22,562 nucleotides of DNA, from positions 1 through 22,562 of the forward strand of contig NW_021836797.1 of NCBI RefSeq assembly GCF_006345805.1. The letters run 5' to 3'. The translations under genes and the position numbers were made by a program. Source of the DNA: Octopus sinensis (lineage: Eukaryota). Shown piece after piece: positions 2,850 to 22,562 of the stretch (its first letter is position 1; every line of letters starts with the position of its first letter). The notes beneath the pieces are model-generated. The model saw nothing but the letters and a program-made list of their open reading frames with translations. It did no database searches and was not told the origin of the DNA.

Positions 2850-2915
2850 CATATATATATATATATATATATAAATATATATATATATGTATGTATATAT
2901 ATATATAAAGTAAAT
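2850..2915. repeat. (TA)n microsatellite
   Basis: Direct reading. Confidence 0.9.
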
Positions 2916-2969
2916 ATGTACTTACATATAAGACCAAAAAGGGTGCGGGCTCGCTATATATATATGTAT

Positions 2970-3593
2970 ATGTAAAAAAATACAAACTGGGACAAGAACG
3001 CAAAACATTTAGAAGACGATACAAAAAACATGGACGGGACATTCGAAGCCTTCAATCTTCAGTCAAGAACCGGATCATCCTCGCAATTTCTCTTCATCCT
3101 CACACGTGACTAACTGACCTTTTCGTTGTCAGCAGCCGTCCAGGCTAGACACATTTTTTTCTCTCTCTGCCCAAGGCATTTAACTAAAGCGCCAGCTCAA
3201 GTTCACACGTCCTGTCGAAAAGACGCCTGTCTGTGACGTCCTATTTTTGTTGTTATTATTTATTATTATCATTATTGTTTTTACGTATTTTCGTATTCTT
3301 ATTCGTGTTATCATTATTGTTTTTACGTATTTTTGTATTCTTAGTCGTGTAACATCGTCCGTTTTCCCGTCCTTGTTTGTATACATTCGAGGCTTTCTTC
3401 CAAGGAATCTAATGCGCTTGGCTTAGATTTTCCTTTGGGGCTGGCCAGGTCTGAGCAATCTCAAGATTAATCAGCCGAAATTGCGAGAATGATCCAGTTC
3501 TTGACTGAAGATTGAAGGCTTCGAATGTCCAGTCCGTATTTTTTGTATCGTCTTCTAAATGTTTTGCGTTCTTGTCCCAGTTTGTATTTTTTT

Positions 3594-3597
<4 letters not shown>
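2970..3597. repeat. Inverted repeat with 121-bp arms (2970-3090 and 3477-3597) and 386-bp spacer; arms end in microsatellites
   Basis: The arms are reverse complements with 5 mismatches by manual comparison. Confidence 0.92.
3267..3350 (+). repeat. 42-bp tandem duplication (2 copies)
   Basis: tatcattattgtttttacgtattttcgtattcttattcgtgt at 3267 and 3309, with 2 mismatches. Confidence 0.85.

Positions 3598-3644
<47 letters not shown>
3596..3644. repeat. (CA)n(TA)n microsatellite
   Basis: Direct reading. Confidence 0.9.
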
Positions 3645-4400
3645 ATTAGTGAATGGAAGAAATGGAGTTGAACGAAGATTGTACAGAATTCCTTTTATTA
3701 CATTCTACACATGTTTCAAAGGCCACAATTTTCCAAATTCTGATTAAATAAGGATACCATATTGCAGCTTTCTCTTCAGGAAAAACCAGGAATTACGTCG
3801 TCAGAACAAAACAAAACAAAGGCGCAGCAAAGCAATTCGAACGAGGACGCTCCTTAAGAGCCCATGGGTAAAATGTTTATCAATGTACGTTGAAATCGGG
3901 GGATTGGTGGGGGCCGACGAAAGGTCCGTTGGAATAAATCCAGGTCAGGCCGCGGTCAAATCTAGTAGGTGAGGAATTAATGAGAACAAGGGGTGTGGAG
4001 ATGTTCTGTGTGACCAAAGTTAATGTTCTGAATATTTTAAGAATTCAGGTTGTATTTTTTAGGGGCGAGACAATACCTACCTAAAAGCATGTGTGTGTAT
4101 ACTAGCCTATGTGTGCGCCGCCGTATGTTGGCGAGGGGCCCTAGATAATGAGCACTGCTGAAAAAAGCCTGTCAGGCGGCTGAAATAATTCTGTGTTCGT
4201 GTGTCCGTCTGTGGCCTGCTTGTCTAAAATTATCCTCGTCAAAGAATCAGGAGGGTATATAATTCCAGCGCTTGCTTCTAAAAAAACCGACCAATCGCCT
4301 AAGGGGAGTAATTTCCCCTTGCAAGAGTTATTCAGAGATTTTTAAAAAGTTTTTTGTACAATCTTCGTTCAACTCCATTTCTTCCATTCACTAATTATAT
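3640..4400. repeat. Inverted repeat with perfect 46-bp arms (3640-3685 and 4355-4400); left arm continues as a minus-strand Penelope-type tail with hammerhead motif (3703-3782)
   Basis: atataattagtgaatggaagaaatggagttgaacgaagattgtaca and its exact reverse complement. Confidence 0.9.
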
Positions 4401-4548
4401 TAAACTTCAATTATCCGCACCAACGCACGGTTGCAACACCATATGGTCATATCTCCAACCGTGTTTTTTCTGCTGTGATTTTTGCTACCCAGGTATCGGT
4501 TAAACTTTTGAATAATCCGTAACAAGATAATTCATCTTTCCATTTCAA

Positions 4549-4549
4549 C

Positions 4550-4611
<62 letters not shown>
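4549..4611. repeat. (TA)n(TG)n microsatellite
   Basis: Direct reading. Confidence 0.9.
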
Positions 4612-4613
<2 letters not shown>

Positions 4614-4646
4614 ATTGTCCTCATCTGTAGAATTTATAAATAAATA

Positions 4647-5494
4647 TACTCGGTGATATCAGAAAGTTCCTGGACTAGTACTGTAGCATACCAATAGCTG
4701 GTAGCACACGATTGCATGCATCATGACAGCAGTGGCCTTCACGAGGTTGTATGCCGAAAGACTTCGCAGTGTTCACTTTGCGAGTGGAGAAATTTGTGTT
4801 TTTGTGAGCCCGTATATGATGTAGTCTGCACATTTGTCATGGATAGGAGGTGGAACAATAAGCCAGCGTGATTTTTTTGCATTAAACTTGGGAAGTCTAC
4901 TACAGAGACATTCAGAATGCTTCAGCAAGTTTATGGCAATGAAGTAATGGGTCGTACGCACTGCTTTGAGTGGCAAGGGCGCTTCAAAAGTGGAAGACGA
5001 TGAGAGCGTCACCCCTGGAATTATGGTATAGTGCTTTGAGAATTCCTCACCCAGGGACAGACAATTAATTGAGAGTTTTACTGTGATGTTTTGAAGCGTT
5101 TAAGAGAAGACATTCGGCTAAAGCAACCGAGCACAAAGTATTGAATTCATCGCGATGACACCGCACCCTGTTGCCGGAATCTCCTCTTGCGTAGATTTCT
5201 CGCCAAACTCACGAGATTCAGAACCGGCGGACTTCCATCTCTTTCCCAAGATGAAAATACACCTCAAAGGTCACCGTTTTAACACTTGTCGAGATCGAGA
5301 CGAATCACAGAAGGTCCTCGACTCGCTAACAAAAAACGACTTTGAAGACGGATTCCAAACGTAACAGTAACGCTGGGACTGGTACCTTGCTGCACTAGGT
5401 GACTATTTTGAAGGTGATGATATTGAAACTTAGGTAAATGAATGATACTTTATTAAATATAACTACTCTGCAAACATTTTGGTGCCGCCTCGTA
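4647..5494 (+). mobile_element. Mariner-family transposon relic, internally deleted
   Basis: Broken frames give FCIKLGKSTTETFRMLQQVYGNEVMGRTHCFEW (mariner HTH), QGQTIN*EFYCDVLKRLRE and DFHLFPKMKIHLKGHRF. TA at both ends; TIRs degenerate (about 18 of 31 matching by eye). Confidence 0.85.
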
Positions 5495-5505
5495 TATACA
5501 AAAAC

Positions 5506-5734
5506 GCATACATACATACATACATACATACATACACACATACATACACACATACATACATACATACATACATCATACATACATACATACATACATACAT
5601 ACACACAAACACACACACAAACACATACATACATACATGCATACATACACACAAACATACATACATACACACACATACATACATACATACATACATACAT
5701 ACATACATACATACATACACACACACATACATAC
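5506..5734. repeat. (TACA)n/(CA)n compound microsatellite, left part
   Basis: Direct reading; continues at 6687-6805. Confidence 0.95.
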
Positions 5735-6686
5735 TGTTAGGTCGTCGGGTGCTCAACTCGACTCAGGACCCTAAGTCAGCGACGACGACTACGCTCAGTC
5801 AAACGGAAATCCACCACAGAAAGCGGAGTTAGACAGCGAACGCAAACCAGTAACCGGAGACGACAACACCAAAAGTGAGAGACAGCGGAAGGCAGTTGCT
5901 TACATTTAACATCAATTTATATAATTTTACATCAATTAAACGTAATACATTTCAAATACATTTAAAAACAAAAGCATTTAACAATTCACAGCTTTACAAA
6001 TCAAACAAACGTAATACACAAATCGACATTTCAAAAACAATCAACTGGTTGACATGCAACACAATACAGAATCAAACAAAGTCTTTCTCTTTTCTTTTCT
6101 CCTCCTTCTCTTCTTACGCAGTGAGTTCGTTCTCAATTTTCTTTAAACATTTACAAGTTCTTTTATTTTTTCTTAAACAGATTACACGTTCTTTTTACAG
6201 AGTCACTTTTTCAAACATTATAATTCAACATTAAAGTCCAAACACAAATCGAAACATAAACAACAATAGTGAATGTTTCTGAACCCGCTATAGTAGTCCA
6301 GCTTCTTTGCTGTCATCCTCTTCTCTACCTCTCGCCTGCCAATTTCTCATTATTCTCTGCCTGTCTTCCTCGCCTCGCCGTTGCCTCTCGCCATCACCAC
6401 CTTCTTGGCTGATCGTCCGTATCGCTGTCTGTCTCTTGCCAACTGAACCCTTCTCTGGCCCTTCGCTGTCTGATCTCCCTAACACCAGTTCGTAGCATTT
6501 TAAAGGGTGGCATTCCAATTTTTTCAGCTTTACCTGACCGTGTAAGGGTCAGAGGTACTTCATATACTCATTAATCTTAACCTTGCCGTTGACAAGACAA
6601 AAAACCATTATTTTTTCCCCTGCCCGTTAGACTCCAACCAACGGAACTAGGGCATAGCGTTTTCCCGCTTATTCACCTCCGTAACA
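5735..6686. mobile_element. Probable solo LTR (952 bp) inserted in a (TACA)n microsatellite
   Basis: Termini TGTTA...TAACA, with ATAC on both sides (5731-5734 and 6687-6690). Complex sequence splits one (TACA)n tract in two. No coding homology recognised. Confidence 0.6.
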
Positions 6687-6805
6687 ATACATACATACAT
6701 ACACACAAACACACACACATACATACATACATACATACATACATACATACATACATACATACATACATACATACATACATACATACGTACGTACATACAT
6801 ATACA
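6687..6805. repeat. (TACA)n microsatellite, right part
   Basis: Direct reading; ends about 65 nt upstream of the exon 5 acceptor. Confidence 0.95.
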
Positions 6806-6871
6806 TTTTATTGTTTCGGTTTACATAGTTATCAAGTTTTTTATCGTTAAATATTTTTCCTACTGTTGCAG

Positions 6872-7008
6872 AAGCGAATATTTTCCAGGCGATTATGGAT
6901 CTTTTTACGGCCGGATCGGACACAACATCTACCGTTCTTATCTGGGTTTTTATATATATGGCCAAATATCCTGATATACAGGACAAATGTCGAGCAGAAA
7001 TCGAGAAG
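6872..7008 (+). CDS. CYP exon 5 (I-helix and J-helix)
   Basis: Acceptor ttgcag|AA, donor AAG|gtaaaa. Translates (E)ANIFQAIMDLFTAGSDTTSTVLIWVFIYMAKYPDIQDKCRAEIEK, containing the AGxDTT oxygen-binding motif. Confidence 0.95.
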
Positions 7009-7467
7009 GTAAAATATCAGATTCTTTCATTTATATGTCTAATTTATTTTAATTTTTATTAAAATATATTTCATTGCGTGCATATAAAATTGCGTAGTAA
7101 GTATCTTAACACTTATGTTGTTTTGTGACTGTAGTACTGGTTCTGAAGTAGCACTGTACTAATGGTTCTGAATTTTAGGCCTAACAAAGATCATTAATAA
7201 GGATTAACACCAAAAAATCCAACTTCTGATTATTTAATCAATTATCGATATCTCACTGACACTGCGGAGTTACTGAAGTAGATCCTCATTTTAAATTTTT
7301 ATCAATAATTTACAAAAGTGAGAAGTTGACACAAAGTCCGAGAGTTCTTCTGCGTTGGCACTTACCAAGGGCAAACTCACGAAATATACTCGATCTGCGG
7401 TTGACACCACGTCGTCCAAACCATGCCAGCACTCTACTCAACACTTCAACACACTAGTCCAAAATAT

Positions 7468-7511
7468 TACATACATACATACATGCATACATACACACGC
7501 TCACACAAAAA

Positions 7512-7593
<82 letters not shown>
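7468..7593. repeat. (TACA)n(CA)n(TA)n compound microsatellite
   Basis: Direct reading. Confidence 0.9.
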
Positions 7594-7595
<2 letters not shown>

Positions 7596-7811
7596 TTAGC
7601 AGAAGTAACAGTTTGACTCCAGGTTTCAGAGCTTCGTGAGTTTACCCTTGACGTATGCGAACGCACGATACTCAACCTAAACCTTCAATACTGTATGTGT
7701 GTGTGTATGTGTGTGCGTATGACGCACCCTGTTAACTCTGCAAAATATTAGTAAAATGCTAAATATTGATGAAAAGTACGCATATTTTTTCTGTTTGCAC
7801 CAACATAACTA

Positions 7812-7945
7812 TATATATATACATACATACATATATACATACACACATATATATGTATATATATATATGTGTGTGTGTGTGTATACATATGCATATACAT
7901 AGATATGTATGTATATACATAAATACACACACACACATGTATATA
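7812..7945. repeat. Degenerate (TA/CA/TG)n microsatellite
   Basis: Direct reading. Confidence 0.85.
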
Positions 7946-8385
7946 TGCAAACAAAATTACACACATTTCCATCCATAAGTCGTTGCGTCTGATTCAAAGA
8001 TAAATATGCTAAACGCTGTCGTATTTCGCCGGATGAGAACAATTCATTTCATAAATAAGACCCAGTTTTCTTGACGAGATCATCGATTTAGAGCTGGCTT
8101 TGAGAGAAGAGACACAACCAGGCAGAAACCTTGCAGGGTCTCAATTTCCCATTTCCATCATGAATAGAGCACATTGTGGACACACATACCTTTGGAAGGA
8201 TGTGTTCTCCGAATCAGAAATGCAACTGTGATTAGCATATTCATGTCCGAATTTACCAGACCGTATTAAGAATGAATGGATTATATACACAAGCAGGCAC
8301 ACGCACACACGCACAAACAAACGCACACACACATATTTAGAGTATCAAAATATAGATATCCATTATAACGAATTGTTAATTCCAG

Positions 8386-8482
8386 ATCACCGATCTGAAT
8401 AGACCAATCACAATGGAAGACAAACAACACATGACATACGTTGCAGCGACTCTACTTGAAGTCCAGAGAATTGCTCCTGTTG
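8386..8482 (+). CDS. CYP exon 6 (K-helix)
   Basis: Acceptor ttccag|ATC, donor G|gtaagc. Translates ITDLNRPITMEDKQHMTYVAATLLEVQRIAPV, containing ExxR (EVQR). Confidence 0.94.
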
Positions 8483-8817
8483 GTAAGCAAGCAGTGACAT
8501 AACTTTTATTGCTAAAGGGAAGCTATTCCACGCGCCATATTTTCTATAATTTGTCCAATAACGAAATGATTTTAGCACAAAAGAGAGAAAAAAAATTAAT
8601 CATCGCACATATGATATCGATATCAAATTATTAGATCCTTTGTCAAGGGAGGGTCAAAGGAAATAAACAGCTAAATCCTCTCAAACGAACTCTCCTTATC
8701 AAGACTAATTCAATAGCTATCTTAGTGTACATAACACCCTTCCCCTGATGAAAGAAAAAAAATGCAAAATCAAAGAAGTATATAGTTTTCTCACCAAGAC
8801 ATATGTATATCACAATA

Positions 8818-9189
8818 CTAGCACTATGACCCGGTAACACCGGGTCATAGTGCTAGTGCATGCATATACAGCTGCGTGCGTGCGCACATACACGCGACTA
8901 CTGTCCAAATCTCCAACCAATCACATACAGCTAACTGGCATTCAATTGGCATATCAAGATTCGGGCATTTTGATTGGGTTTTGGATAGAAAATTCACAAA
9001 AAAGTCACTTCTATTGATTTTTTAATGGCTTTGCGGGGGACTGGGGAATGTAAAGATGTGCACGACCATCCTTGGACGGTTTTGAATGACCATAGACAGT
9101 TCGAGCCCTCTAACTGAAAAATTGTGGATTTGTATAAAGGACTCACACATAGACAGACAGACATTTTGCTGTTTATAAATAGAGAGAGA
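8818..9189 (-). mobile_element. Non-autonomous Helitron (372 bp)
   Basis: On the minus strand: A|TCTCTCTCTATTTATAAA 5' end, a (GTCT)n tract, a subterminal hairpin gacccggtgttaccgggtc and a CTAG|T 3' end. Inserted between A and T with no TSD. Confidence 0.78.
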
Positions 9190-9851
9190 TAAAGTATTCG
9201 AAATCCAAAGAAAATGAGCATTTGTTGTATTTGTGAGTTTCTTTAAAACATTGAAAAGGCTGGAATGCAATTTCATGAAGTGTTTAACAATAAATACATG
9301 TACCTATGCAAAAATAAAAGAATACATAGAAAAGACATGGGCACGATAGAGTGCTTAAAGCGTAAACAACGGATGAAAACATATGATTATGATGACAATT
9401 ATCATGAGATAAAATCAAAACTAGTTAAATAGATTGCTCCGAAAGGAATTTGAATTCTCGAAAAGACGTTTCCTCGCGTTCCGACTAATTTGAATGCTTT
9501 CGATGGGTAATTCGAATGATATAAATGCTAAATGCTTTGACCGTAGTGCGAAATTGAATGATCGGAAACCGAATTTGAATGACTAACTTCATGTTGCTAA
9601 ATTTTATCGTTATTTTCTTTTTGTGATTTTCGAATGACCCGATAATCGAATTGAATGACAAACGCACGAAAATGACTGCAAAAACCTATGTATTTGGTCA
9701 GCTTCCCAACATGAAACCAAGTTTTACAGCTAAATAAACTCATAACCTTGCACTACAATGTTACATCACCAAACGTACTCTCCTATGACAGCCTATATCA
9801 AATTACCATTTATCTCAACATTATTAATATTTAGAAAATTTCTTTTCACAG

Positions 9852-10058
9852 CTACACTCACTGCTCCACATGCCTCTACGGTAGACACGAAACTAGGAGG
9901 TTATGATATTCCAAAACATACCATTGTTCAATTCATGTTAATGGCTGCTCATTATGATCCGAACTATTGGGATAAACCAGAGGAATTCCGACCTGAAAGA
10001 TGGATTGATGAAGATAATGAGTTAAAGAAAAATGAGGCTTTCATGCCTTTCTCTTTGG
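9852..10058 (+). CDS. CYP exon 7 (beta sheets, meander, start of heme motif)
   Basis: Acceptor tcacag|CT, donor G|gtaagt. Translates (A)TLTAPHASTVDTKLGGYDIPKHTIVQFMLMAAHYDPNYWDKPEEFRPERWIDEDNELKKNEAFMPFSL(G). Confidence 0.96.
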
Positions 10059-10615
10059 GTAAGTATTGTAAATAGATTTTAATGATAGGGCACGCCTATT
10101 CAGGAGGGAAGACAATAACATTATCTTGTTACTGATGGTGACTTCTTTTTATATAATCGTAATGTGTCATTTGGAGATTGAGGTATCCTGTTTAAGGATC
10201 ACACGTGGTCGGTTTGCTAGGTCATAGCTAAAACTTTATGTGTTAGCTTACATCCTCCTGCTTCGAATCGTTCTTCGGTGGCAGTCATCACTTCAGGGTC
10301 AATAAAATAGCAATATTCTACTGCTTCTTATTAATTCTTTATACTTTCTTACGAAAGTTTGGTCTTTTGCTCACTTAAGATTTATCATCCTTTTATTAGC
10401 AAAATTTTGCCTCTTTATGTTATCTTCATTATTGATAAGAGTTCTTTTAAAATTTAATTCAGGAAATATTTTATTCTCTGAAATATTACAAGAGCTATGA
10501 TATTTAAATTTATTCGTCGTATAATAGAAATTTAATATTTTATTAAAATGCAAACTTTATTATATTCTATCATTTAATTATGCTATGTATTTTATATCGT
10601 CTATTTTATTTGTAG

Positions 10616-10794
10616 GTCCCAGAATGTGTGCAGGAATATCACTAGCCAATATTGAAAATTTCATGGTTTTTTCAAATATCTTACAAAGATTTAGATTGGA
10701 AAGTCCTGACGAAACACCAATGACAATGGAAGGCAAACAATCGGGAATTATTTACGTTCCAGTGAATGATAATATCCGTGCAATTCCACTGTGA
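10616..10794 (+). CDS. CYP exon 8 (heme-ligating Cys, L-helix, stop codon)
   Basis: Acceptor ttgtag|GT. Translates (G)PRMCAGISLANIENFMVFSNILQRFRLESPDETPMTMEGKQSGIIYVPVNDNIRAIPL*, completing FxxGxRxCxG as FSLGPRMCAG. Confidence 0.96.
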
Positions 10795-11064
10795 GATATA
10801 TTTGTATTATATATTTGAGGACAACACTTCACAGTTCACTGGCTGTACAGTTGAAAGTATATCACTTTGATGTACAAAGGTATCAAATTCTTATAGAATG
10901 CTGTTATTTTTTAAATGGTATTTAACGAAATAACATAAATTTCTGTTCATTAGTGGTATTACATTGATCTACATGCTACAATACATAACATGTGTGCAGT
11001 AGTATCTACTCATAAACTTCATAAAATTATAAGTCATATGGTAGTTGCAATGTTTAATTCAATC

Positions 11065-11070
11065 AATAAA
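11065..11070 (+). promoter_or_regulatory. Candidate polyadenylation signal of the CYP gene
   Basis: AATAAA about 270 nt after the stop codon, followed by T-rich sequence. Confidence 0.5.
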
Positions 11071-12189
11071 GCTCCAGTATTATTTTCTTTGAGTCACAAT
11101 TTTCTTTATTAACCTAATTTCAGACTTAATATAAATCGTCGAAATGCACACCAAAAGGCTGTCTTTTCTGTTATTTTTGAAAAAGTTTCAGCAACATGGG
11201 ACTGGTATGTCCTACCTTGGGGATCCTACTGGAACGATAATGACATTCCTTTACCAAAATCTGTCAACATAAAAACCAAAACTATCTCTGTTTCTACTTT
11301 AGATAATACAGTTATAGACCTTCCTGGGTCTGTGACTGTTTTATCTACTTTCAGTTTCTAGTAGACGCGGCACAAAAAGGTTTCAGTGAATTGCAAAATT
11401 ATCAGGTATTAGAGAACCGAGTGAAGCTTCTTAGATGCTCGGTGATTGTCTGGAGCGAACGTACAATAACGCCGAACGTGCTCTGGAGATCATGGAGAGA
11501 ATGTTGCAGGATTTGCCTGACAGCAAATACTGAAAGATGAAGCAGAATTGCAGTGGGTTTTTTTTCATGTGTCCTGTGTCGAACCCTGTCACTAATTCCC
11601 AAATGAACAAAACACGATGAAACCCATGCTGCCTTTAATCGCCATCGCTTTGGATAACATTTTTAACAGTTTGCAAATATAGATTCTATACATTCAGAGA
11701 TCAGTTGTCAGGTCTGTGAGTAAGAAAATGTTACAAGAGAGTAAGAGAGAGATTCCTTCCGGTTGTTAAGGAATCGTGGACATAACACCCATAAGGAGAA
11801 TGTTTAAGATAGTTGGTGATTGTCAAAGCTGTAATGAGCACAATCTAAAGCACATCGCAATTCTTAAAATGATTTTTTTATTGCCACCTATGATACCTTT
11901 GATTAGATTATGGCTTATTCCAGATAACGTCCCCATATTTGGTACTTTTTCCTGGGATATAGTGGGAGAGATGGACACATAGAGGCAAATATTATGTTTG
12001 AATATAAAATTCATACTATATATTTGAACAGACTAAAATCTTACTAAAAAATTAACATGAAATACGAAAGCAACATGAAATACGGAGGAAAACTTGGGTA
12101 TGCGAGCAACGAGAGAAAGAAATGGAAAGCAAGACAAGTAACTTAAAGAACGACCCTTCATCAGTTGTCGGCTGTTCATCTACTCCGCA

Positions 12190-12620
12190 TTTCGAGCAAT
12201 TAACGACAATATGAGGCTATAAACTCTAAACTTGGAATGACCAATTTTAAATACTATTGATTTTGCTCATAAGGTATTGGAATCTTATATGTTTACCATT
12301 CTGCCCAAATAATGGATCTATAAATACAATATCCCTGCGTATCTCACATCTATTTTCATTCCTCCACTTCACTTTCTATTTCGTATCTTATCTAAATTAA
12401 CTATTGCTTAACCATCCTCTCACACCGTCTCCGATGAAGGGATAAAATAAATATCCTAGAAACAGCTGTACGACCTTCTATTTATAAACGTTCTAAAATC
12501 TACACAACCTTGGTTTTTTATCTCATTACGGGAAAAAAAATTTATATACACACGTTGGACCCCTTATTCGCATAATCACCAAACCTGGAACTTAACTATG
12601 GTCTATCCATAGCACTTACT
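12190..12620 (+). mobile_element. Probable Penelope-like-element 3' fragment with degenerate hammerhead motif (12427-12474)
   Basis: GTCT-CCGATGA-A-GGGATA(AAATAAA)TATCCT-A-GAAAC-AGCT-GTA-CGAC. Boundaries are approximate. Confidence 0.5.
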
Positions 12621-12685
12621 CAGCATTACCTGACACCTTTGGGTCTCACTGACACCATTAATTCTCATAACCTCTCTCTATCTCT

Positions 12686-12706
12686 ACATACACACACAGA
12701 CACACA

Positions 12707-12781
<75 letters not shown>
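12686..12781. repeat. (CA)n(TA)n microsatellite
   Basis: Direct reading. Confidence 0.9.
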
Positions 12782-12783
<2 letters not shown>

Positions 12784-13025
12784 TATGTGCTAGACGGCTC
12801 AGGGTTAATAGAGAAATGCATACATTGTATATAACGCACAAAAAAATTTAAAACTACAGTACGCCAAACTCAGTAACTAAGGCAAATAAAATGCCATTCT
12901 AAATAAACAATTGCACTTTAGAAAAATTAATTAATGAAATTAAAAGGAGTTATGTTTTTATTCTACATGAAGATCTTACAGTGACACTCTAGCCCTCAAA
13001 ATGAGACTCGTATCACATTTGGCTT

Positions 13026-13311
13026 GATATAACTCGGATTTAAAATCAGCGTTAGGTCCTAACAGTTTAGCTCAGCTAGGGAAATATAATTTCGAAGTCG
13101 AAAATTGTCAGGAATAGTAAGAGAAACGCAAAAGAAAGAATACATACATGTATATAAACATGTATACATGTGAGTGCACATTACAACATTTTACTTAACC
13201 CACAGGCGTGCGCATACAAACACACACAATACGCACAGGGGCGCACACATGCATATATTCATGTGCGTGTGTGTGTGTGTGTGTGGACGCGTGTGCGTGC
13301 GTGCGTGTGTG

Positions 13312-13349
<38 letters not shown>

Positions 13350-13526
13350 CGTGCGTGTGTGTGTGTGTGTGGACGCGTGTGCGTGCGTGCGTGTGTGTGT
13401 GTGTATGTGTGTGTGCGTGCGTGCGTGTGTGCGTGTGTGCGTGCGTGTGTGTGTGTGTGTGTGTGTGCGTGCGTATATGTGTGTGTGTGTGCGCGTGCGT
13501 GTGTGTGTATGTGTGTGTGTGCGTGC

Positions 13527-13564
<38 letters not shown>

Positions 13565-13570
13565 TGTATG
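13026..13570 (+). repeat. Segment duplicated at 21536-21922 (offset 8510 bp)
   Basis: About 240 bp of unique sequence from gatataactcggatt to gcatatattcatgtgcgt is identical at both sites, followed by a compound (GT/GCGT)n tract of different length. Confidence 0.95.
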
Positions 13571-13586
13571 TGTGTGTGTGTGTGTG
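13261..13586. repeat. Compound (GT)n/(GCGT)n microsatellite
   Basis: Direct reading. Confidence 0.95.
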
Positions 13587-13865
13587 AAAGTTACAAGGTG
13601 CATAAGTTGGAATATCTTGACAGAATTGAGAATCAGCAGCCCCAGCTTTTCTTTCATCCTCAGATTTTGATGAAAATCAGAAACGGGTATTTTGTTTATG
13701 AAACTGAAATGGAAAGGATTAAGACAAAAGCCCCTTCATAAGTGTTCTCTTCAAAAATGCTGAAATATTTCGTATAGATCTCCAGTCACTCGAAGCATGA
13801 ATCTGGTTCCTCCGTTTATAGATTAAAAACAGAATTAATTCCTAAAAGTGGAGGTTAATATAACA

Positions 13866-14202
13866 GTGGAGGCGCATGGCTCAGTGGTTAGAGCGTCGAG
13901 CTTACGATCGTGAGGTTGTGAGCTCGAATCCCGGACCGGGCTGCGTGTTGTGTTCTCGAGCAAGACACTTTATTTCACGTTGCTCCAGTTCACTCAGCTG
14001 TAGAAATGAGTTGCGACGTCACTGGTGCCAAGCTGTATCGACCTTTGTCTTTCCCTTGGATAACACTGGTGGCGTGGAGAGGGGAGGCCGGTATGCATGG
14101 GCGACTGCTGGTCTTCCATAAAAACAACCTTGCCCAGACTTGTGCCTCAGAGGGTAACTCTCTAGGTGCAAACCCATGGTCACTCATGACCGAAGGGGGT
14201 CT
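13866..14202 (+). mobile_element. Full-length tRNA-derived SINE (Deu/Nin-like core by recollection)
   Basis: Pol III A box tggctcagtgg (13877-13887) and B box gctcgaatcc (13922-13931). Flanked by an 11-bp target-site duplication ttaatataaca (13855-13865 and 14203-14213). Confidence 0.88.
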
Positions 14203-14331
14203 TTAATATAACATCTTATCGAATAAGAGATGCAATATAACGTTCCTTTCTTCAGACGAGATATACAGCAGGCATACTGCAAGGGCATCCTGAATTTTTT
14301 TTTTCTTCAAAGTGTACAAATAGATTATCTG

Positions 14332-14371
14332 TTTCTTTATTAATCACAAGGGGCTAAACATAGAGGGGACA
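14332..14371 (-). mobile_element. 3'-tail fragment of the second SINE family, interrupted by the Tc1 insertion
   Basis: tttctttattaatcacaaggggctaaacatagaggggaca matches the unit ends at 19257 and 20579. A short continuation (ggacacacaa) follows the TIR+TA at 16450 and 17805. Confidence 0.7.
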
Positions 14372-14373
14372 TA

Positions 14374-15591
14374 CAGGGGTTGGAAAAAATAATAGAAACA
14401 CCATAAAATTTCAAACAAATTTACTTTAATATGGGGTAGGACCGCCTTTGGCAGTAATTACAACTTCAATTCTACGAGTTATGAACTTGTACAAAGTTTG
14501 AATTGTTCCCAAATTAATTTTTGTCCATTCTTCGGCTAAAACAGTCTCCAGTTCTTGTAGTGATGATTGTTGGAGGATATCGACTCCTTTCTTGTTTTTC
14601 TAAAATGCACTATAAACGTTCAATAATATTGAGATCTGGGGACTTTGGTGGCCAGGTAAGATGTTCAACTTCACTAGAATGTTCCTCGTGCCATTCAGTA
14701 ACAACTTTAGCTGTGTGAATTGGTGCATTATCATCCTGAAAGATTGCGTTTCCCTCCGGAAGCAGTTCTGCAACCATAGGATGAATTTGATCAGATAAAA
14801 TGCTTAATTCTGCCATGAAAGGAAACCATTGGGCCGTCGGATTTCCAAGATATAGACCCCCCCTCCAGATCATTACAGATCCTCCTCCATGTTTAACAGT
14901 TGGAATGCTTCTTTTGGCTGTCTCCACACGTATACTCAGCCGGTGGCCGGAAAAAAGGTAAAGGATGACTCGTTGGGGAAAATAGCAATATTCCACTGCT
15001 GTAGGTACCAATTCTGTAGGTTTTTACTCCACTCTAAACGCTTTGCAACGTTTGTTTTTGAAAGTAGCGGTTTTCTGATTGCAGCCTTCCCGTGAAATCT
15101 GGCTTTGTGCAGCTTCAGATAAACAGTTTTGTGGAAACTAGGTTCTGGAGGTGGTCATTAAGCTCTGCAGTAATTTTGAAGCTGTACTTTAGTGATCCTT
15201 TCTAAAAATTCGCGTAAGAGTCCGACGGTCCCTATCTGAAAGTTATGGCTTTCTTCCGGAGATTTGTTTCGATGAGGAGCGTTTCCCTCTTTCTCAAAGG
15301 CTGTCATTACTTTTGGGACAGTTCTTCCTGATACACCAAACATCTCAGTTGTTTTAGTTTCGCTAGCGTCTGCCTTACAAGCACCAACAATTTGACCTCT
15401 TTGAAAGTCCGATAGATAAATCATTTTAATGAATTCTAATTACCTTTTTCTGATGATATCTGAAAAGAAGCAGCAATTTTAGCAAAACATATTAAGCAGC
15501 ATTAAAAACAAATTTAAAAAACATAAAAATGAACAAGCTTTTAACAGTTTTATAGATATTTCAAAATTATGATGCTATCATGCTAGGTGTT
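14374..15591 (-). mobile_element. Tc1-superfamily DNA transposon with degenerate DD36E-type transposase; distal TIR removed by a deletion
   Basis: TA target at 14372-14373, then TIR caggggttggaaaaaataatagaaacacc. Minus-strand fragments: MIYLSDFQRGQIVGA (HTH start), PTVKHGGGSVMIW and FQDDNAPIH...WPPKSPDLNIIE, with 36 residues between the second catalytic D and E. Contains stops and frameshifts. Confidence 0.92.
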
Positions 15592-15841
15592 ACCCCCGGG
15601 TCCAATAGCCTTTCCAATTATTGGAAATATTCCTCAGATGGCTACAACCACAGACATTAATTTAAAGATGAAGGAATTCGAAAACAATTTGGAGGTATCT
15701 TTAGACTCTATTTTGGTTCTGAAACCATGGTGATTGTATGCAAAACCGAATGGATTTTAGAAGGATTGGTAAAGAAAGGAGAGGAATACATAGGAAGACC
15801 CTACTGGCTGTACGTACCGAAGACATTATTCCAAAAGAAAG
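15590..15841 (+). pseudogene. CYP exon 1 copy A, 5'-truncated and frameshifted
   Basis: Starts abruptly at LPPGP, fused to Tc1 sequence. It lacks the C of CTT(Leu) between 15676 and 15677 (gaa ttcga versus gaa cttcga in B, C and D). Donor G|gtaagt is intact. Confidence 0.9.
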
Positions 15842-16243
15842 GTAAGTCATTTATTTATGTCAACAAATGTCATCGCTTTTATTTCCTCCCCCTTGCATTT
15901 TCCCCCGTTTCCACAACACAGAATTCAATTCTACTTCTACATTTCCTTACTTTGTCTGACGATTTTACTCTATGCTTCTTTGTTTCTCATCTCGGGGTCT
16001 CGTTGGTCGGACAACTGCTAACTCAATCTGTTTACTCTCTTCCTAGTTTATCAAGGGAAACTATTCAAGCATATCACCACTATATATTTCAATCTTCTTA
16101 GCGTTACTTATGACTATGATTCGCTGTAGTGTTACTTTTAGACCGGAATATCACCAGTTTACTTTGATGCTATATTTTCTGTTCTGTAAAGGCATTCTCG
16201 CCATAACGCCTAGAACGCTATTCACAAAACGGGTGGACTTAGT

Positions 16244-16447
16244 GATAGATCAGTCATTTTAATGAACTCTAATTACCTTTTTCTGATGATATCTGAAAAG
16301 AAGCAGCAATTTTAGCAAAACATATTAAGCAGCATTAAAAAAAAATTAAAAAAACATAAAAATGAACAAGCTTTTAACAGTTTTATAGATATTTCAAAAT
16401 TGTGATACTATCATGCTAGGTGTTTCCATTATTTTGTCCAACCCCTG
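16244..16447 (-). mobile_element. Duplicated terminal ~200 bp of the Tc1 element (TIR, transposase 5' leader and start codon)
   Basis: Matches 15411-15591. Ends ggtgtttccattattttgtccaacccctg|TA, the reverse complement of the 14374 TIR with 2 mismatches in 29 nt. Confidence 0.93.
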
Positions 16448-16449
16448 TA

Positions 16450-16825
16450 GGACACACAATATGTCAAACTGCTTATCTATATTTTTTCTGTTTAATCAAG
16501 GCTGACTTGGTATTATATAACACCAACGAAAGTTATTGCAAGCAATTGGTTTTACATGGTGAAAACGTGAGAACAACGATTGAGATTGATATCTAAAGAG
16601 CTTAGTAATCATGCGCTGGAACTTAAAGTGACCTCGGTTGCAGAAATAGACTTTGAATACAACTTTGTTGTTAAACACCTAACCTACTTATATTCAGTTG
16701 ACTGCAAGTATAACTATTTTGTTACCTGCACAAACCTGTATATAGGTAGTAAACCACACTCGTCTAAAGAAGGCTGGGCTCTTAACGAAAATACAGATAC
16801 ATTATTGCAGCAATAACCTAGGATT
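16450..16825 (+). promoter_or_regulatory. Putative proximal promoter/5'UTR of exon 1 copy B (repeated at 17805-18180 and, 5'-truncated, at 21923-22203)
   Basis: Sequence between the Tc1 TIR and the ATG, near-identical in three copies. TATA-like TATATAG lies 87 nt before each ATG (16739, 18094, 22117). Function is inferred from position only. Confidence 0.45.
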
Positions 16826-17196
16826 ATGGATGTTTCAGCATCGTATTTTGTAGAAGCTATTAATATACAAAGTCTTCTGATTGGTAGTAGTTACTTTATT
16901 GCTAGCACGATGGCTTATAACTAGATCGAAATATAATTACAATTTACCCCCGGGTCCAATAGCCTTTCCAATTATTGGAAATATTCCTCAGATGGCTACA
17001 ACCACAGACATTAATTTAAAGATGAAGGAACTTCGAAAACAATTTGGAGGTATCTTTAAACTCTATTTTGCTTCTGAAACCATGGTGATTGTATGCAAAA
17101 CCGAATGGATTTTAGAAGGATTGGTAAAGAAAGGAGAGGAATTCAAAGGAAGACCTTACTGGATGTACGTACCGAGGATATTAACCCAAAAGAAAG
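16826..17196 (+). pseudogene. CYP exon 1 copy B, full length with +1 frameshift
   Basis: ATG at 16826 (MDVSASYFVEAINIQSLLIG). An extra T near 16885 (attggtagtagtt versus attggagtagtt in C and D) shifts the frame. Donor G|gtcagc. Confidence 0.88.
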
Positions 17197-17598
17197 GTCA
17201 GCCATTTATTTACGTCAACAAATATCATCGCTTTTATTTCCTCCCCCTTGCATTTTCCCCCATTTCCACAACACAGAATTCAATTCTACTTCTACATTTC
17301 CTTACTTTGTCTGACGATTTTACTCTATGCTTCTTTGTTTCTCATCTCGGGGCCTCGTTGGTCGGACAACTGCTAACTCAATCTGTTTACTCTTTTCCTA
17401 GTTTGTCAAGGGAAACTATTCAAGCATATTACCACTATATATTTCAATCTTCTTAGCGTTACTTATGACTATGATTCGCTGTAGTGTTACTTTTAGACCG
17501 GAATATCACCAGTTTACTTTGATGCTATATTTTCTGTTCTGTAAAGGCATTCTCGCCATAACGCCTAGAACGCTATTCACAAAACGGGTGGACTTAGT

Positions 17599-17802
17599 GA
17601 TAGATCAGTCATTTTAATGAACTCTAATTACCTTTTTCTGATGATATCTGAAAAGAAACAGCAATTTTAGCAAAACGTATTAAGCAACATTAAAAAAAAA
17701 TTAAAAAAACATAAAAATGAACAAGCTTTTAACAGTTTTATAGATATTTCAAAATTGTGATACTATCATGCTAGGTGTTTCCATTATTTTGTCCAACCCC
17801 TG
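17599..17802 (-). mobile_element. Second duplicated terminal ~200 bp of the Tc1 element
   Basis: Near-identical to 16244-16447, with the same TIR and TA. Confidence 0.93.
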
Positions 17803-18180
17803 TAGGACACACAATATGTCAAACTGCTTATCTATATTTTTTCTGTTTAATCAAGGCTGACTTGGTATTATATAACACCAACAAAAGTTATTGCAAGCAA
17901 TTGGTTTTACATGGTGAAAACGTGAGAACAACGATTGAGATTGATATCTAAAGAGCTTAGTAATCATGCGCTGGAACTTAAAGTGACCTCGGTTGCAGAA
18001 ATAGACTTTGAATACAACTTTGTTGTTAAACACCTAACCTACTTATATTCAGCTGACTGCAAGTATAACTATTTTGTTACCTGCACAAACCTGTATATAG
18101 GTAGTAAACCACACTCGTCTAAAGAAGGCTGGGCTCTTAACGAAAATACAGATACATTATTGCAACAATAACCTAGGATT

Positions 18181-18550
18181 ATGGATGTTTCAGCATCGTA
18201 TTTTGTAGAAGCTATTAATATACAAAGTCTTCTGATTGGAGTAGTTACTTTATTGCTAGCACGATGGCTTATAACTAGATCGAAATATAATTACAATTTA
18301 CCCCCGGGTCCAATAGCCTTTCCAATTATAGGAAATATACCTCAGTTGGCTACAACCACAGATATTAATTTAAAGATGAAGGAACTTCGAAAACAATTTG
18401 GAGATATCTTTAGATTTTATTTGGGTTCCGAAACCATGGTGTTTGTATGCAAAACCGAATGGATTTTAGAAGGATTGGTAAAGAAAGGAGAGGAATTCAT
18501 AGGAAGACCCTACTGGGTCTACGTACCGAAGATATTAAGCCAAAAGAAAG
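18181..18550 (+). CDS. CYP exon 1 copy C, intact first coding exon (123 codons plus 1 nt)
   Basis: Translates MDVSASYFVEAINIQSLLIGVVTLLLARWLITRSKYNYNLPPGPIAFPIIGNIPQLATTTDINLKMKELRKQFGDIFRFYLGSETMVFVCKTEWILEGLVKKGEEFIGRPYWVYVPKILSQKK(G): N-terminal membrane anchor, PPGP hinge and GEEFxGRP. Phase-1 donor G|gtcagt. Confidence 0.9.
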
Positions 18551-19256
18551 GTCAGTCATTTATTTATGTCAACAAATATCATCGCTTTTATTTCCTCCCC
18601 CTTGCATTTTCCCCCATTTCCACAACACAGAATTCAATTCTACTTCTACATTTCCTTACTTTGTCTGACGATTTTACTCTGTGCTTCTTTGTTTCTCATC
18701 TCGGGATCTCGTTGGTCGGGCAACTGCTAACTCAATCTGTTTACTCTCTTCCTAGTTTATCAAGGGAAACTATGCAAGCATATCACCACTATATATTTCA
18801 ATCTTCTTAGCGTTACTTATGACTATGATTCGCTGTAGTGTTACTTTTAGACAGGAATATCACCAGTTTACTTTGATGCTATATTTTCTGTTCTGTAAAG
18901 GCATTCGTGCCTTGAACGCTATTCACAAAACGGGTGGATTCTACGTTGTGTTTGTTAAGCACAAGCAACTTGTCTTTTCTTTAACACAGAACACACACTA
19001 CTAACACTGCCATAAACTCCTCAAATAGCACACAGACTTACAGACGTTTGTGTATATTGGATATTATAAACCGAGATGGATAAAGAAACACGTTAGTAGT
19101 CACAAACGAACGACACATTATGTATATTAAAAAAAGCGTGACAGTCATGGGAAGAACGTTATGTAACGTAGATAAAGATGTAACGAGGGTTAAGCAACAA
19201 TTACGAGAATATTCTCACGGCAACAATCTAACTATTCATTCGATGTGCTTGAAATA

Positions 19257-19671
19257 TATTTCTTTATTGCCCACAAGGGGCTAAACACAGAGAGGACAAA
19301 TAAGGACAGACAAAGGGATTAAGTCGATTGCATCGACCCCAGTGCGTAATTGGTACTTAATCTATTGACCCCGAAAGGATGAAAGGCAAAGTCGACCTCG
19401 GCGGAATTTGAACTCACAACATAACGGCAGACGAAATACGTATTTCTTTATTACCCACAAGGGGCTAAACACAGAGGGGACAAACAAGGACAGACAAAGG
19501 TATTAAGTCGATTACATCGACTCCAGTGCGTAATTGGTACTTAATTTATCGACCCCGAAAGGATGAAAGGCAAAGTCGACCTCGGCGGAATTTGAACTCA
19601 CAACATAACGGCAGACGAAATACGGCTACGCATTTCGCCCGGCGTGCTAACGACTCTGCAAGCTCGCCGCC
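19257..19671 (-). mobile_element. tRNA-derived SINE (MetaSINE-like core by recollection), dimeric: one complete unit plus a 184-bp headless body
   Basis: Minus strand starts ggcggcgagcttgcagagtcgttagc, with B box gagttcaaattcc and core ctttcatcctttcggggtcgataaa. Period 184 (cccacaagggg at 19270 and 19454). A 13-bp TSD tgtgcttgaaata lies at 19244-19256 and 19672-19684. Confidence 0.88.
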
Positions 19672-20035
19672 TGTGCTTGAAATAGCAGTCAAGAATATCT
19701 GAAACCATACAGTCATAAAAAAAAAACAACAATGTAGTTGCTGATAGACAAGATAACAGGGAGGTCGTGGTCTGACGGCCTTTATCATAGCTAATTACAG
19801 GGGTTGTGCAACAACTCATAGAACTTCCATGCAGGAGGTTCCTCTGTAAAATAATACCCGCCATCATTTCCACAAATTACACCTTAGAGTATGGAAAAAT
19901 GGGTAAGTGCAAGGCTTCCTTCCACAGGACTGCTGAAGCTAGAAATAACAAGTCAATTCCCGTATCTTGTCGTCAGACCAGATTTAACAGACAACCATTG
20001 CCAATACCACACGCACGAAATATGAAGTTGTGGGT

Positions 20036-20358
20036 TACACACACACGCACACAAACACACATACACATACATGCACGCACTCACACACACATACATGCAT
20101 ACTTACATGCATAAATACATGCATGCATACATACATACGTACATACATACATCCATGCATACATACATACGTATATACATACGTACATACATATATACAT
20201 ACATACATGCATACATACATACATACATACATACATGCATACATACATACATACATACATACATACATACATACATACGTACATGCATGCATACATACAT
20301 ACATACATACATACATACATGCATACATACATACATACATACATGCATACATACATAC

Positions 20359-20390
<32 letters not shown>
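20036..20390. repeat. (CA)n(TACA)n(GA)n compound microsatellite
   Basis: Direct reading. Confidence 0.95.
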
Positions 20391-20393
<3 letters not shown>

Positions 20394-20578
20394 CAGAAAC
20401 AGAGAGCGAGAAAGTAGAACGTAACTGTAAGATGATACAGTAAACAGTAATTTTTGATCTGATAGTTTGTAGAGGCGAGTAGGGGACGAATCTCAGAGCA
20501 AAATTTCTTGTCATGAAGTGTTTATTTTGTTTTATTGGTAATTATACACATTCCTGAAAAAAGTACAAACACTTAATA

Positions 20579-21167
20579 TATTTCTTTACTGCCCAGAAGG
20601 GGCTAAACACAGAGGGGACAAACAAGGACAGACAAAGGGTTTAAGTCGATTACATCGACCCCAGTCCGTAACTGGTACTTAATTTATCGACCCCGAAAGG
20701 ATGAAAGGCAAAGTTGACCTCGGCGGAATTTGAACTCAGAACGTAACGACAGACAAAATACCTATTTCTTTATTACCCACAAGGGGCTAAACACAGAGCG
20801 GACAAACAAGGACAGACATAGGTATTACGTCGATTACATCGACCCCAGTCCGTAACTGGTACTTAATTTATCGACCCCGAAAGGATGAAAAGCAAAGTTG
20901 ACCTCGGCGGAATTTGAACTCAGAACGTAACGACAGACAAAATACATATTTCTTTATTACCCACAAGGGGCTAAACACAGAGCGGACAAACAAGGACAGA
21001 CATAGGTATTAAGTCGATTACATCGACCCCAGTCCGTAACTGGTACTTAATTTATCGATCCCGAAAGGATGAAAAGCAAAGTTGACCTCGGCGGAATTTG
21101 AACTCAGAACGTAACGACAGACAAAATAAACATTTCGCCCGCTAAGCATTTCGCCCGGCGCGCTAAC
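20579..21167 (-). mobile_element. Same SINE family, trimeric (three 184-bp bodies, head truncated)
   Basis: Unit starts recur at 20592, 20776 and 20960. A partial head catttcgcccggcgcgctaac ends at 21167. No TSD seen. Confidence 0.88.
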
Positions 21168-21187
21168 ATGTCTGTCCAACGAAGCTG

Positions 21188-21283
21188 TACACACACAACA
21201 CACAAACACGCACACAAACACACAAAAAAAACACACGCACGCACGTGTGTGCACACACGTACACACGTACACACGTACACACA
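21188..21283. repeat. Degenerate (CA)n microsatellite
   Basis: Direct reading. Confidence 0.85.
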
Positions 21284-21535
21284 TGGGATTCTAAATATTG
21301 TTATCAGACATTCAAGATAGCCTCCGCTATTTCTAAAATGGGTTAAACTAGCAAAATGCTCTTTGTCCTCTTTTCTTACACTTCAACCTCGATGTAAACA
21401 CTGAGTACAACATTAATGGAGCAAGAGAGAGGGTGGAGAAAGAGAAAGGAGGAGTGAGTATGTGAATCACTCCCCCTCTCTTTCTCTCACACACGCACAC
21501 ACACACACTCACACACACACATACTCAGACACACA

Positions 21536-21922
21536 GATATAACTCGGATTTAAAATCAGCGTTAGGTCCTAACAGTTTAGCTCAGCTAGGGAAATATAAT
21601 TTCGAAGTCGAAAATTGTCAGGAATAGTAAGAGAAACGCAAAAGAAAGAATACATACATGTATATAAACATGTATACATGTGAGTGCACATTACAACATT
21701 TTACTTAACCCACAGGCGTGCGCATACAAACACACACAATACGCACAGGGGCGCACACATGCATATATTCATGTGCGTGTGTGTGTGCGTGCGCGTGCGT
21801 GCGTGTGTGTGTGCGTGGACGCGTGTGGGTGCGTGCGCGTGTGCGTGCGTGTGTGCGTGTGTGCGTGCGTGTGCGTGCGCGCGCGCGTGTGTGTGTGTGT
21901 GTGTGTGTGTGTGGTGCGTGTG
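21536..21922 (+). repeat. Second copy of the 13026-13570 segment, fused at 21923 to the CYP exon 1 promoter
   Basis: Identity starts at gatat (21536). After the (GT)n tract the sequence switches to attggttttacatggtgaaaacg, which matches 16545 onward. Confidence 0.95.
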
Positions 21923-22203
21923 ATTGGTTTTACATGGTGAAAACGTGAGAACAACGATTGAGATTGATATCTAAAGAGCTTAGTAATCATGCGCTGGAAC
22001 TTAAAGTGACCTCGGTTGCAGAAATAGACTTTGAATACAACTTTGTTGTTAAACACCTAACCTACTTATATTCAGTTGACTGCAAGTATAACTATTTTGT
22101 TACCTGCACAAACCTGTATATAGGTAGTAAACCACACTCGTCTAAAGAAGGCTGGGCTCTTAACGAAAATACAGATACATTATTGCAGCAATAACCTAGG
22201 ATT

Positions 22204-22562
22204 ATGGATGTTTCAGCATCGTATTTTGTAGAAGCTATTAATATACAAAGTCTTCTGATTGGAGTAGTTACTTTATTGCTAGCACGATGGCTTATAACTA
22301 GATCGAAATATAATTACAATTTACCCCCGGGTCCAATAGCCTTTCCAATTATTGGAAATATTCCTCAGATGGCTACAACCACAGACATTAATTTAAAGAT
22401 GAAGGAACTTCGAAAACAATTTGGAGGTATCTTTAAACTCTATTTTGGTTCTGAAACCATGGTGATTGTATGCAAAACCGAATGGATTTTAGAAGGATTG
22501 GTAAAGAAAGGAGAGGAATTCAAAGGAAGACCTTACTGGATGTACGTACCGAGGATATTAAC
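22204..22562 (+). CDS. CYP exon 1 copy D, open reading frame running off the window end
   Basis: ATG at 22204 with no stop or frameshift in 119 codons. Nearly identical to copy B but without the +T, and with GGT(Gly) where B has GCT(Ala). Confidence 0.9.
   Translation, partial: MDVSASYFVEAINIQSLLIGVVTLLLARWLITRSKYNYNLPPGPIAFPIIGNIPQMATTTDINLKMKELRKQFGGIFKLYFGSETMVIVCKTEWILEGLVKKGEEFKGRPYWMYVPRIL

Follow-up and report, generated by a model that had tools for sequence, protein, structure and literature searches.

The 22,562-bp window analyzed here is an entire unplaced contig (VCDQ01002085.1) of the Octopus sinensis assembly GCA_006345805.1, and it carries, downstream of a cytochrome P450 gene (gene 1), four copies of the first coding exon of a second, neighboring P450 gene (gene 2). 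Judging from the sequence, the locus is probably a young, decaying tandem duplication of a 1.35-kb segment at the 5′ end of one CYP2-like gene, that is, ordinary debris of a P450 cluster. A preliminary description of the same DNA had proposed that two of the copies, C and D, may be UGT1- or protocadherin-like cassettes of alternative first exons. A system of maintained, diversified cassettes of that kind is not supported: the duplication is young and includes a transposon fragment, two of the three copies in the regular array are broken, the Octopus vulgaris counterpart V1 has a stop codon, copy C shows no extra constraint, and copy D is absent elsewhere.

The four exon-1 copies (A to D; Table 1) lie where they had been placed before and share 93 to 100% identity over 250 to 370 nt. 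Because of this identity, and because A to C recur head to tail with a period of 1355/1354 bp, the resemblance is not due to chance. Copy A lacks its first 39 codons together with the ATG, has a 1-nt deletion, and abuts a truncated terminal repeat of a Tc1 element. Copy B possesses an ATG and a private 1-nt insertion of T, which shifts the frame after codon 20. Copy C is open for 123 codons plus 1 nt and ends in the donor AG/GTCAGT (the slash marks the exon border), and copy D is open for 119 codons up to the end of the contig, beyond which its donor would lie. The earlier account of C as intact, D as open, and A and B as frameshifted is therefore borne out. Its view of the four as one array needs amendment, as the regular spacing extends to A to C only; D is spaced otherwise, 3.65 kb after C and behind a duplicated piece of the window (13026 to 13412) with a (GT)n tract.

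In A, B, and C the donor is AG/GT in phase 1, as had been noted, which fits both the acceptor at 952 (tttag/GA) and the acceptor of gene-2 exon 2 (cag/GA), each of phase 1. Also, tblastn with full-length paralogues found only exon-1 matches past position 10794 and no sequence of exons 2 to 8, in agreement with the first reading of the window. The exon ends serve to distinguish the copies. The C-type exon ends in ...aagatattaagccaaaagaaag, with the diagnostic end ...ccgaagatattaagccaaaagaaag, and the second type, here called alpha, ends in ...aggatattaacccaaaagaaag, with the diagnostic end ...ccgaggatat[t/a]aacccaaaagaaag. Copy A and the O. vulgaris copy V1 have the diagnostic end ...ccgaagacattattccaaaagaaag, and gene-2 exon 2 begins with gaatattctttaatacagg. 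The Pfam p450 match of C covers profile positions 1 to 71. Between C and D, ~10 of 119 residues differ, some of them in the B-helix/substrate recognition site 1 (SRS1) region, with a ratio of nonsynonymous to synonymous differences per site (pN/pS) of 0.41 and a nucleotide difference of ~5%.

A full unit begins with 205 bp from the right end of a Tc1/mariner-like element, terminal inverted repeat included; then come 377 bp of native upstream DNA, exon 1, and a stretch of intron 1 of ~400 bp. Where one unit meets the next, intron 1 runs into an internal position of the Tc1 element, and the units are 95 to 99.7% identical. Because the transposon fragment travels in each unit, this is a segmental tandem duplication and not a set of independently evolved cassettes. 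In unit A the Tc1 fragment is joined, with 2 nt of microhomology, to codon 40 of exon 1; the ~520 bp that separate these points in B and C, reaching from within the terminal repeat to codon 39, are absent. The element itself has its left terminal inverted repeat (29 nt, flanked by TA) at 14374 to 14402 and is cut at its right end by the junction with copy A, and its intact right end with the terminal repeat is kept in units B (16419 to 16447) and C (17774 to 17802). The terminal repeats were thus found three times, with none expected by chance. O. vulgaris has the same insertion.

Comparison with O. vulgaris indicates how old the copies are. Positions 7458 to 15594 of the window align at 95.9% to positions 1 to 8258 of the O. 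vulgaris gene-2 locus (L001), and the two loci are colinear. After the same transposon, the O. vulgaris locus has only two units, V1 and V2. V1 (L001 8656 to 9025) has a perfect donor, AG/GTAAGT, and is open except for an in-frame TAA between the residues GLVK and GEE. V2 (L001 10001 to 10370) is the start of the annotated messenger RNA (mRNA) for CAI9729732.1, with exon 2 8.3 kb downstream. Two types of exon 1 are common to both species: a beta type, comprising V1, C, and the 3′ part of A, and the alpha type, comprising V2, B, and D. Because both types are found in both species, the duplication predates the species split and is real rather than an assembly expansion. Copy A is a dead pseudo-exon and the positional orthologue of V1. 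Unit B is of the alpha type with, besides its frameshift, a private G>C change, and unit C is of the beta type, its intron-1 part passing from 18551 into unique intron. Mosaic stretches among the copies point to shuffling by gene conversion or unequal crossing-over.

The two types differ in how they have evolved. C and V1 differ at 8 of 370 positions in the exon and at 10 of 376, 13 of 394, and 10 of 205 positions in adjoining noncoding sequence (2.7 to 4.9%); since the exon diverges at the rate of its noncoding flanks, there is no extra constraint on C. The alpha exons, compared with V2 over 359 to 370 positions, differ by 2 nt (B) and 1 nt (D), whereas their flanks differ by 3 to 9%. Because the exon is conserved relative to its flanks, alpha is a constrained and presumably functional first exon. 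The pN/pS between alpha and beta is 0.4 to 0.56. Lesions are carried by A and B in O. sinensis and by V1 in O. vulgaris. If the promoter of V1 fires, its transcripts would be targets of nonsense-mediated decay, which makes V1 a natural test of transcription from an upstream cassette.

The preliminary description had itself allowed a mundane alternative, in which only the last copy is used and the others are either dead duplication debris or an assembly expansion. The first half of that alternative is the better reading, given the lesions, the TAA of V1, and an O. vulgaris mRNA model that starts at the last copy; the second half is largely refuted.

The absence of exons 2 to 8 after the copies, considered as a sign of unusual gene architecture, was rejected as such, as the contig simply ends. 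Its physical end is at 22,562, so the window edge is no arbitrary cut. The missing body lies on the O. sinensis chromosome scaffold (L003, CM016869.1:16,097,331-16,146,029). Positions 1 to 3796 of the window align to L003 11693 to 15470 with 35 substitutions and 9 small indels, a divergence of ~1%, and because this is of haplotype level, the contig represents the other haplotype of L003. The scaffold continues with 100 Ns (L003 15471 to 15570; CM016869.1 ~16,112,801-16,112,900), and to the right of this gap it aligns again to the end of the unique part of gene-2 intron 1 in the window (Table 1). The contig is thus a haplotig that spans the 100-N gap of CM016869.1. About 16.8 kb, corresponding to window 3797 to 20577 and holding gene-1 exons 5 to 8, the spacer, and the exon-1 array, are absent from the chromosome record. 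An apparent 4% divergence between window 21130 to 21535 and L003 was discarded as an alignment artifact in a CA-rich tract; in a three-way alignment the unique part is near-identical.

Through this overlap the next exon 2 in the 3′ direction was found on CM016869.1, the contig record itself ending before it. It belongs to a single, phase-compatible body, as had been predicted for a shared body downstream: gene-2 exons 2 to 8 span L003 22729 to 38696 (exon 2, 22729 to 22959; exon 8, 38517 to 38696). Exon 2 lies ~5.9 kb beyond the contig overlap on the scaffold, which gives an intron 1 of ~8.8 kb from C. In O. vulgaris the corresponding exons lie at L001 18658 to 33867, again with a phase-1 acceptor. 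The gap also bears on annotation. The four NCBI isoforms X1 to X4 of "cytochrome P450 2J6-like" (XP_029642614.1 and XP_036363000-3002) fuse gene-1 exon 1, with or without gene-1 exons 2 to 4, to gene-2 exons. Because the gap hides the 3′ half of gene 1 and the first exon of gene 2, these models mix two neighboring P450 genes, and they look like gap artifacts. On the contig, the single annotated gene is at 1026 to 10794. NCBI annotates nothing on the array, which is uninformative, as no gene model can be built from a solitary first exon on a contig.

Copy D requires separate treatment. The last 1027 bp of the contig repeat earlier contig sequence nearly exactly. At 21535/21536, in a CA-rich tract, the contig departs from L003 and L001, both of which go on into intron 1. 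What follows is a copy (X′) of an upstream segment X and then the D segment, which is identical to unit B at 638 of 640 positions; the two differences are B's private T insertion and its G/C change. D is absent at this position from the O. sinensis chromosome scaffold and from O. vulgaris, and it is no conserved feature of the locus. The near-exact terminal repeat formed by X′ and D, absent from the other assemblies of the site, is what a false duplication would leave, a known class of error in diploid assemblies (PMC9516828). We infer that D arose either in assembly, by a mis-join or false duplication at the contig end, or in the genome, by a very recent rearrangement specific to this haplotype; an allele of the other haplotype with a deletion from the (GT)n tract to the upstream region was also considered.

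The history that we favor runs as follows. The contig is an alternative-haplotype piece of a tandem CYP2-clan cluster: the seven 3′ exons of the first gene are followed by a spacer filled with transposons and then by the 5′ part of gene 2. The 5′ module of the latter gene, made up of a portion of the Tc1 element, ~380 bp lying upstream of exon 1, exon 1 itself, and ~400 bp from intron 1, was duplicated in tandem before the two octopus species separated, giving rise to the alpha and beta types of exon 1. Later unequal crossing-over and gene conversion have probably altered the copy number, leaving 2 units in O. vulgaris and 2.6 on this haplotig. The extra first exons, which have no acceptor, would be optional start exons at best and mostly decaying "detritus exons" (A, B, and V1). 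Normally one alpha copy would act as exon 1, spliced across an intron of ~8 to 9 kb to exon 2.

Several observations weigh against this account. The open reading frame of C is intact and its donor matches the consensus; C also retains ~380 bp of upstream DNA of its own, in which a TATA-like motif precedes the ATG by ~85 nt, and it may be transcribed and spliced to exon 2. The sole alpha copy inside the array, B, is frameshifted, so that C or D must serve if the allele is functional. Within a repeat, long-read assembly can leave consensus errors, which could account for the 1-nt frameshifts in A and B. As to D, it lacks B's two private changes and so is not simply B read twice, and a simple overlap of repeats made by the assembler does not account for its second junction, where the (GT)n tract meets the upstream region. 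Because a functional allele needs an intact alpha exon or C, D gains some plausibility as a real copy.

If D is real, it may be the start of a larger duplication, in which a template switch copied X and the segment from 16545 into intron 1. The layout would then be A-B-C-SINEs-X′-B′(=D)-C′-...-exon 2 (SINE, short interspersed element), with the assembler breaking in the second copy and the array bigger and still very young. The contig does end inside sequence 99.7% identical to B, a typical place for an assembler to break; X′ resembles a short templated insertion, with 2 nt of microhomology at the first junction; and on the right side of the gap the chromosome contig begins within the SINE array and is blind to what precedes it. 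D is also intact where B is not, which fits the need for a live alpha copy somewhere. However, O. vulgaris and the O. sinensis chromosome contig both cross the junction point without an insertion, and the 100% identity of X′ and X could equally reflect one molecule assembled twice. We regard this larger duplication as rather unlikely.

A somewhat weaker candidate is a nascent alternative-first-exon P450 with two start exons, C and one of the alpha type, which would be D or else B, should the frameshift of B be a sequencing error. Each would be started from its own duplicated promoter and, as first exons lack an acceptor, joined to one exon 2, yielding two isoforms ~10 residues apart in the N-terminal beta-sheet and the B-helix/SRS1 region. 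At least two tandem first exons do stand before one shared downstream body with no body between them, the reading frames of C and D are open, and the phase-1 GT donors of A, B, and C fit the common exon 2. Each unit keeps 281 to 377 bp of identical upstream sequence that includes the TATA-like motif, and the alpha/beta split is older than the species split, so the types have coexisted for a while. Several intact cassettes kept across related species are, in contrast, not seen: beta is dead in O. vulgaris through its TAA, and A and B are dead in O. sinensis. The beta exon also evolves as fast as the neighboring noncoding DNA, D was not found in two other assemblies of the site, and the cassettes differ by only ~5% in nucleotides, compared with the far more diverged first exons of UGT1A and the protocadherins.

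Protein searches gave no help to such isoforms. A collection of 5.8 billion proteins held no protein or transcript-derived sequence with a C-type N terminus; a query of 199 amino acids (aa) made of beta exon 1 and gene-2 exon 2 returned only four unrelated or partial paralogues, with no C- or D-type junction; and an exact look-up gave no match to the 209-aa open reading frame that runs from copy C exon 1 into the intron. We consider the nascent arrangement improbable, and use of C and D as alternative first exons would seem unlikely on the sequences at hand. The more specific version, that O. sinensis C (beta) and D (alpha) are both transcribed and spliced to the same exons 2 to 8, the beta start having been lost in the sister species, would be slightly more improbable still. 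If it were true, the locus would be a snapshot of how a UGT1A-like arrangement begins and a modest example of alternative-first-exon gene birth.

That assembly turned a single exon 1 into the entire array is highly improbable and largely refuted. Two units are also present at the orthologous position in O. vulgaris, whose chromosome assembly is independent, and the copies differ by 5% in the exon, fall into the types common to both species, and carry private lesions and distinct unit junctions. In favor of such an expansion is the origin of the contig, small and unplaced, in a long-read assembly of a heterozygous, repeat-rich genome, where false duplications are common (PMC9516828).

Upstream of the exon-1 copies, a TATATA motif is present ~85 nt before the ATG in B, C, D, and V1 (window ~16738, 18093, and 22116 for the first three), as a consensus match only. 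V2 and gene 1 carry GTGTATCGG in its place, and ~130 nt of the V2 upstream region resemble gene 1, which suggests a gene-conversion tract between the paralogues.

Table 1. Features of the 22,562-bp O. sinensis contig, in window positions (L001, O. vulgaris gene-2 locus; L003, O. sinensis chromosome locus)
Feature	Positions	Strand	Details
Gene 1, CYP2-clan P450, exons 2 to 8	952-10794	+	Exon model with canonical GT-AG borders; same as NCBI model
Gene-1 exons	952-1177, 1302-1428, 2114-2255, 6872-7008, 8386-8482, 9852-10058, 10616-10794	+	
Segment X	13026-13587	+	~245 nt unique sequence plus (GT)n microsatellite; source of 21536-21922
Tc1/mariner-like element, degenerate	14374-15594	-	Transposase remnants, DDE_3 E=1.5e-9
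Unit A	15411-16243	+	Exon-1 remnant (copy A) 15590-15841; intron-1 part 15842-16243
Unit B, 1355 bp	16244-17598	+	Tc1 16244-16448; upstream 16449-16825; exon 1 (copy B) 16826-17196; intron-1 part 17197-17598
Unit C, last of array	17599-18945	+	Tc1 17599-17803; upstream 17804-18180; exon 1 (copy C) 18181-18550
Unique intron-1 part of gene 2	18946-21535	+	Colinear with O. vulgaris L001 10760-13598; from 20578 also matches L003 15571-16873
184-bp SINE-like tandem monomers	19253-19736, 20575-21242		...CCCACAAGGGGCTAAACACAGAG...
(ACAT)n tract	20036-20363		
X′	21536-21922	+	21536-21785 identical to 13026-13275 (250/250), then shorter (GT)n
Copy D segment	21923-22562	+	Upstream 21923-22203 (0/281 differences from B); exon 1 (copy D) 22204-22562, alpha, putative

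The motifs of a P450 (N-terminal anchor, PPGP, I-helix AGxDTT, ExxR, and the heme loop FxxGxRxCxG) can be seen in the conceptual protein, and the Pfam p450 profile (PF00067) matches gene 1 with 292 bits and exon 1 with 51 bits. The best protein-search matches are Octopus "P450 2B/2J-like" proteins, followed by CYP2U, CYP2J, and CYP2K of other animals, in keeping with the CYP2 clan. The product of our exon model is identical to XP_036356187.1, annotated on this contig in O. sinensis, and exon 1 is located upstream, off the contig. The preliminary description had supposed that a similar array might precede this upstream body. It does not: gene-1 exon 1 is single in O. sinensis (L003 10001 to 10370) and in O. 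vulgaris (9836 to 10205 of the gene-1 exon-1 locus on OX597824.1, L004), and no second copy was found in ~10 kb upstream in either species.

In the tree, genes 1 and 2 pair as sister paralogues, and both octopus species, O. sinensis and O. vulgaris, have an orthologue of each; among the proteins compared, neither has a one-to-one partner in O. bimaculoides. The cluster grows mainly through whole-gene duplication. Further along OX597824.1, in L004 and beyond, the O. vulgaris models CAI9729734-9739 are adjoining, partial or oddly extended gene-1-like P450s (275, 228, 340, and 562 aa), which suggests further partial duplicates or annotation problems in the cluster.

At the end of gene-1 exon 4 (window 2256 to 2274) there is a 4-nt ATCT insertion relative to the chromosome haplotype (L003 13941...). 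It puts the normal donor at 2274 out of frame, and XP_036356187.1 takes a cryptic donor at 2255/2256, so that the conserved residues "SESLSE" are dropped. This haplotype may carry a null or hypomorphic gene 1, although a consensus error could also account for the insertion.

Among the repeats, the second SINE-like array has 3 monomers in the window, 5 in L003 (15571 to 16500), and 2 in L001 (12824 to 13232), and half of a SINE-like monomer at 14302 to 14378 is broken by the Tc1 element. A repeat with a head resembling a transfer RNA (tRNA) lies at 13866 to 14202 (GGCTCAGTGGTTAGAGCG...GGTTGTGAGCTCGAATCCC) and recurs on the opposite strand in L001 (~40673 to 41009) and L003 (~47512 to 47843); ARAGORN found no tRNA gene in the window, including this head. 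Together with (ACAT)n, (GT)n, and (CA)n microsatellites and split P450 reading frames, the SINE-like repeats indicate a eukaryotic locus.

Taken together, this cluster in the O. vulgaris species complex is actively expanding, both by whole-gene duplication and by small 5′-end duplications that leave pseudo-first-exons. For curation, the 22.6-kb unplaced contig can be placed into the gap of CM016869.1. Caution is also in order, as haplotigs and partial duplicates inflate P450 gene and exon counts in this cluster.

How does this arrangement compare with known systems? Like UGT1A, it has a row of first exons before common exons, in compatible phase and with pseudo-cassettes among them. At ~860 bp, each UGT1A first exon encodes the substrate-binding domain in full; these exons stand kilobases from one another behind their own promoters and are strongly diverged and conserved across vertebrates. 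The octopus units, in contrast, are 1.35 kb, 95 to 99.7% identical, and contain a transposon fragment; at most one or two copies are intact, and they are not conserved intact in the sister species. The clustered protocadherins share the topology of tandem first exons before shared downstream exons; their variable exons are large, numerous, and chosen by promoter-enhancer looping, and nothing like this was seen at the octopus locus, where the copies differ by 10 residues.

Closer to the family at hand, aromatase (CYP19A1) is a P450 gene in which tissue-specific use of several promoters and first exons leads into a common exon 2 (for example PMC8067493 and PMC7827799), and the octopus gene likewise has several first-exon copies before a common exon 2. 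In CYP19 the first exons are noncoding, are scattered across tens of kilobases, and leave the protein unchanged; the octopus first exon is coding, and its copies are recent tandem duplicates. The literature on cephalopod CYP2 genes and on coding alternative first exons in P450s yielded nothing specific, the noncoding first exons of CYP19 being the only case met.

The end of the contig resembles the false duplications found at contig ends in diploid long-read assemblies (PMC9516828), in that X′ and D, the last 1 kb, repeat earlier contig sequence at 99.7 to 100% and are absent from the other assembly of the same animal. It is unlike a simple false duplication in that D lacks the two private changes of B and the segment has two junctions, so that double assembly of one molecule is not a full explanation.

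The closest parallel is with detritus exons, a recognized category in CYP clusters (the term is from Nelson et al. 2004, as cited in PMC4365919 and PMC4964396). Such exons are found in tandem CYP clusters as solitary copies close to their parent gene, unaccompanied by its other exons; truncation, frameshift, or a stop has disabled most of them, and they originate by unequal crossing-over. The octopus copies agree with this in being single-exon copies beside their parent gene, arranged head to tail with a common junction, and in the disabling lesions of A, B, and V1; the open state of C is compatible with its low divergence. They depart from the usual detritus exon in that what was duplicated is a first exon with its proximal upstream region, so that an intact copy could in principle start transcripts, and in that copy C is still open and the two types have persisted across speciation.

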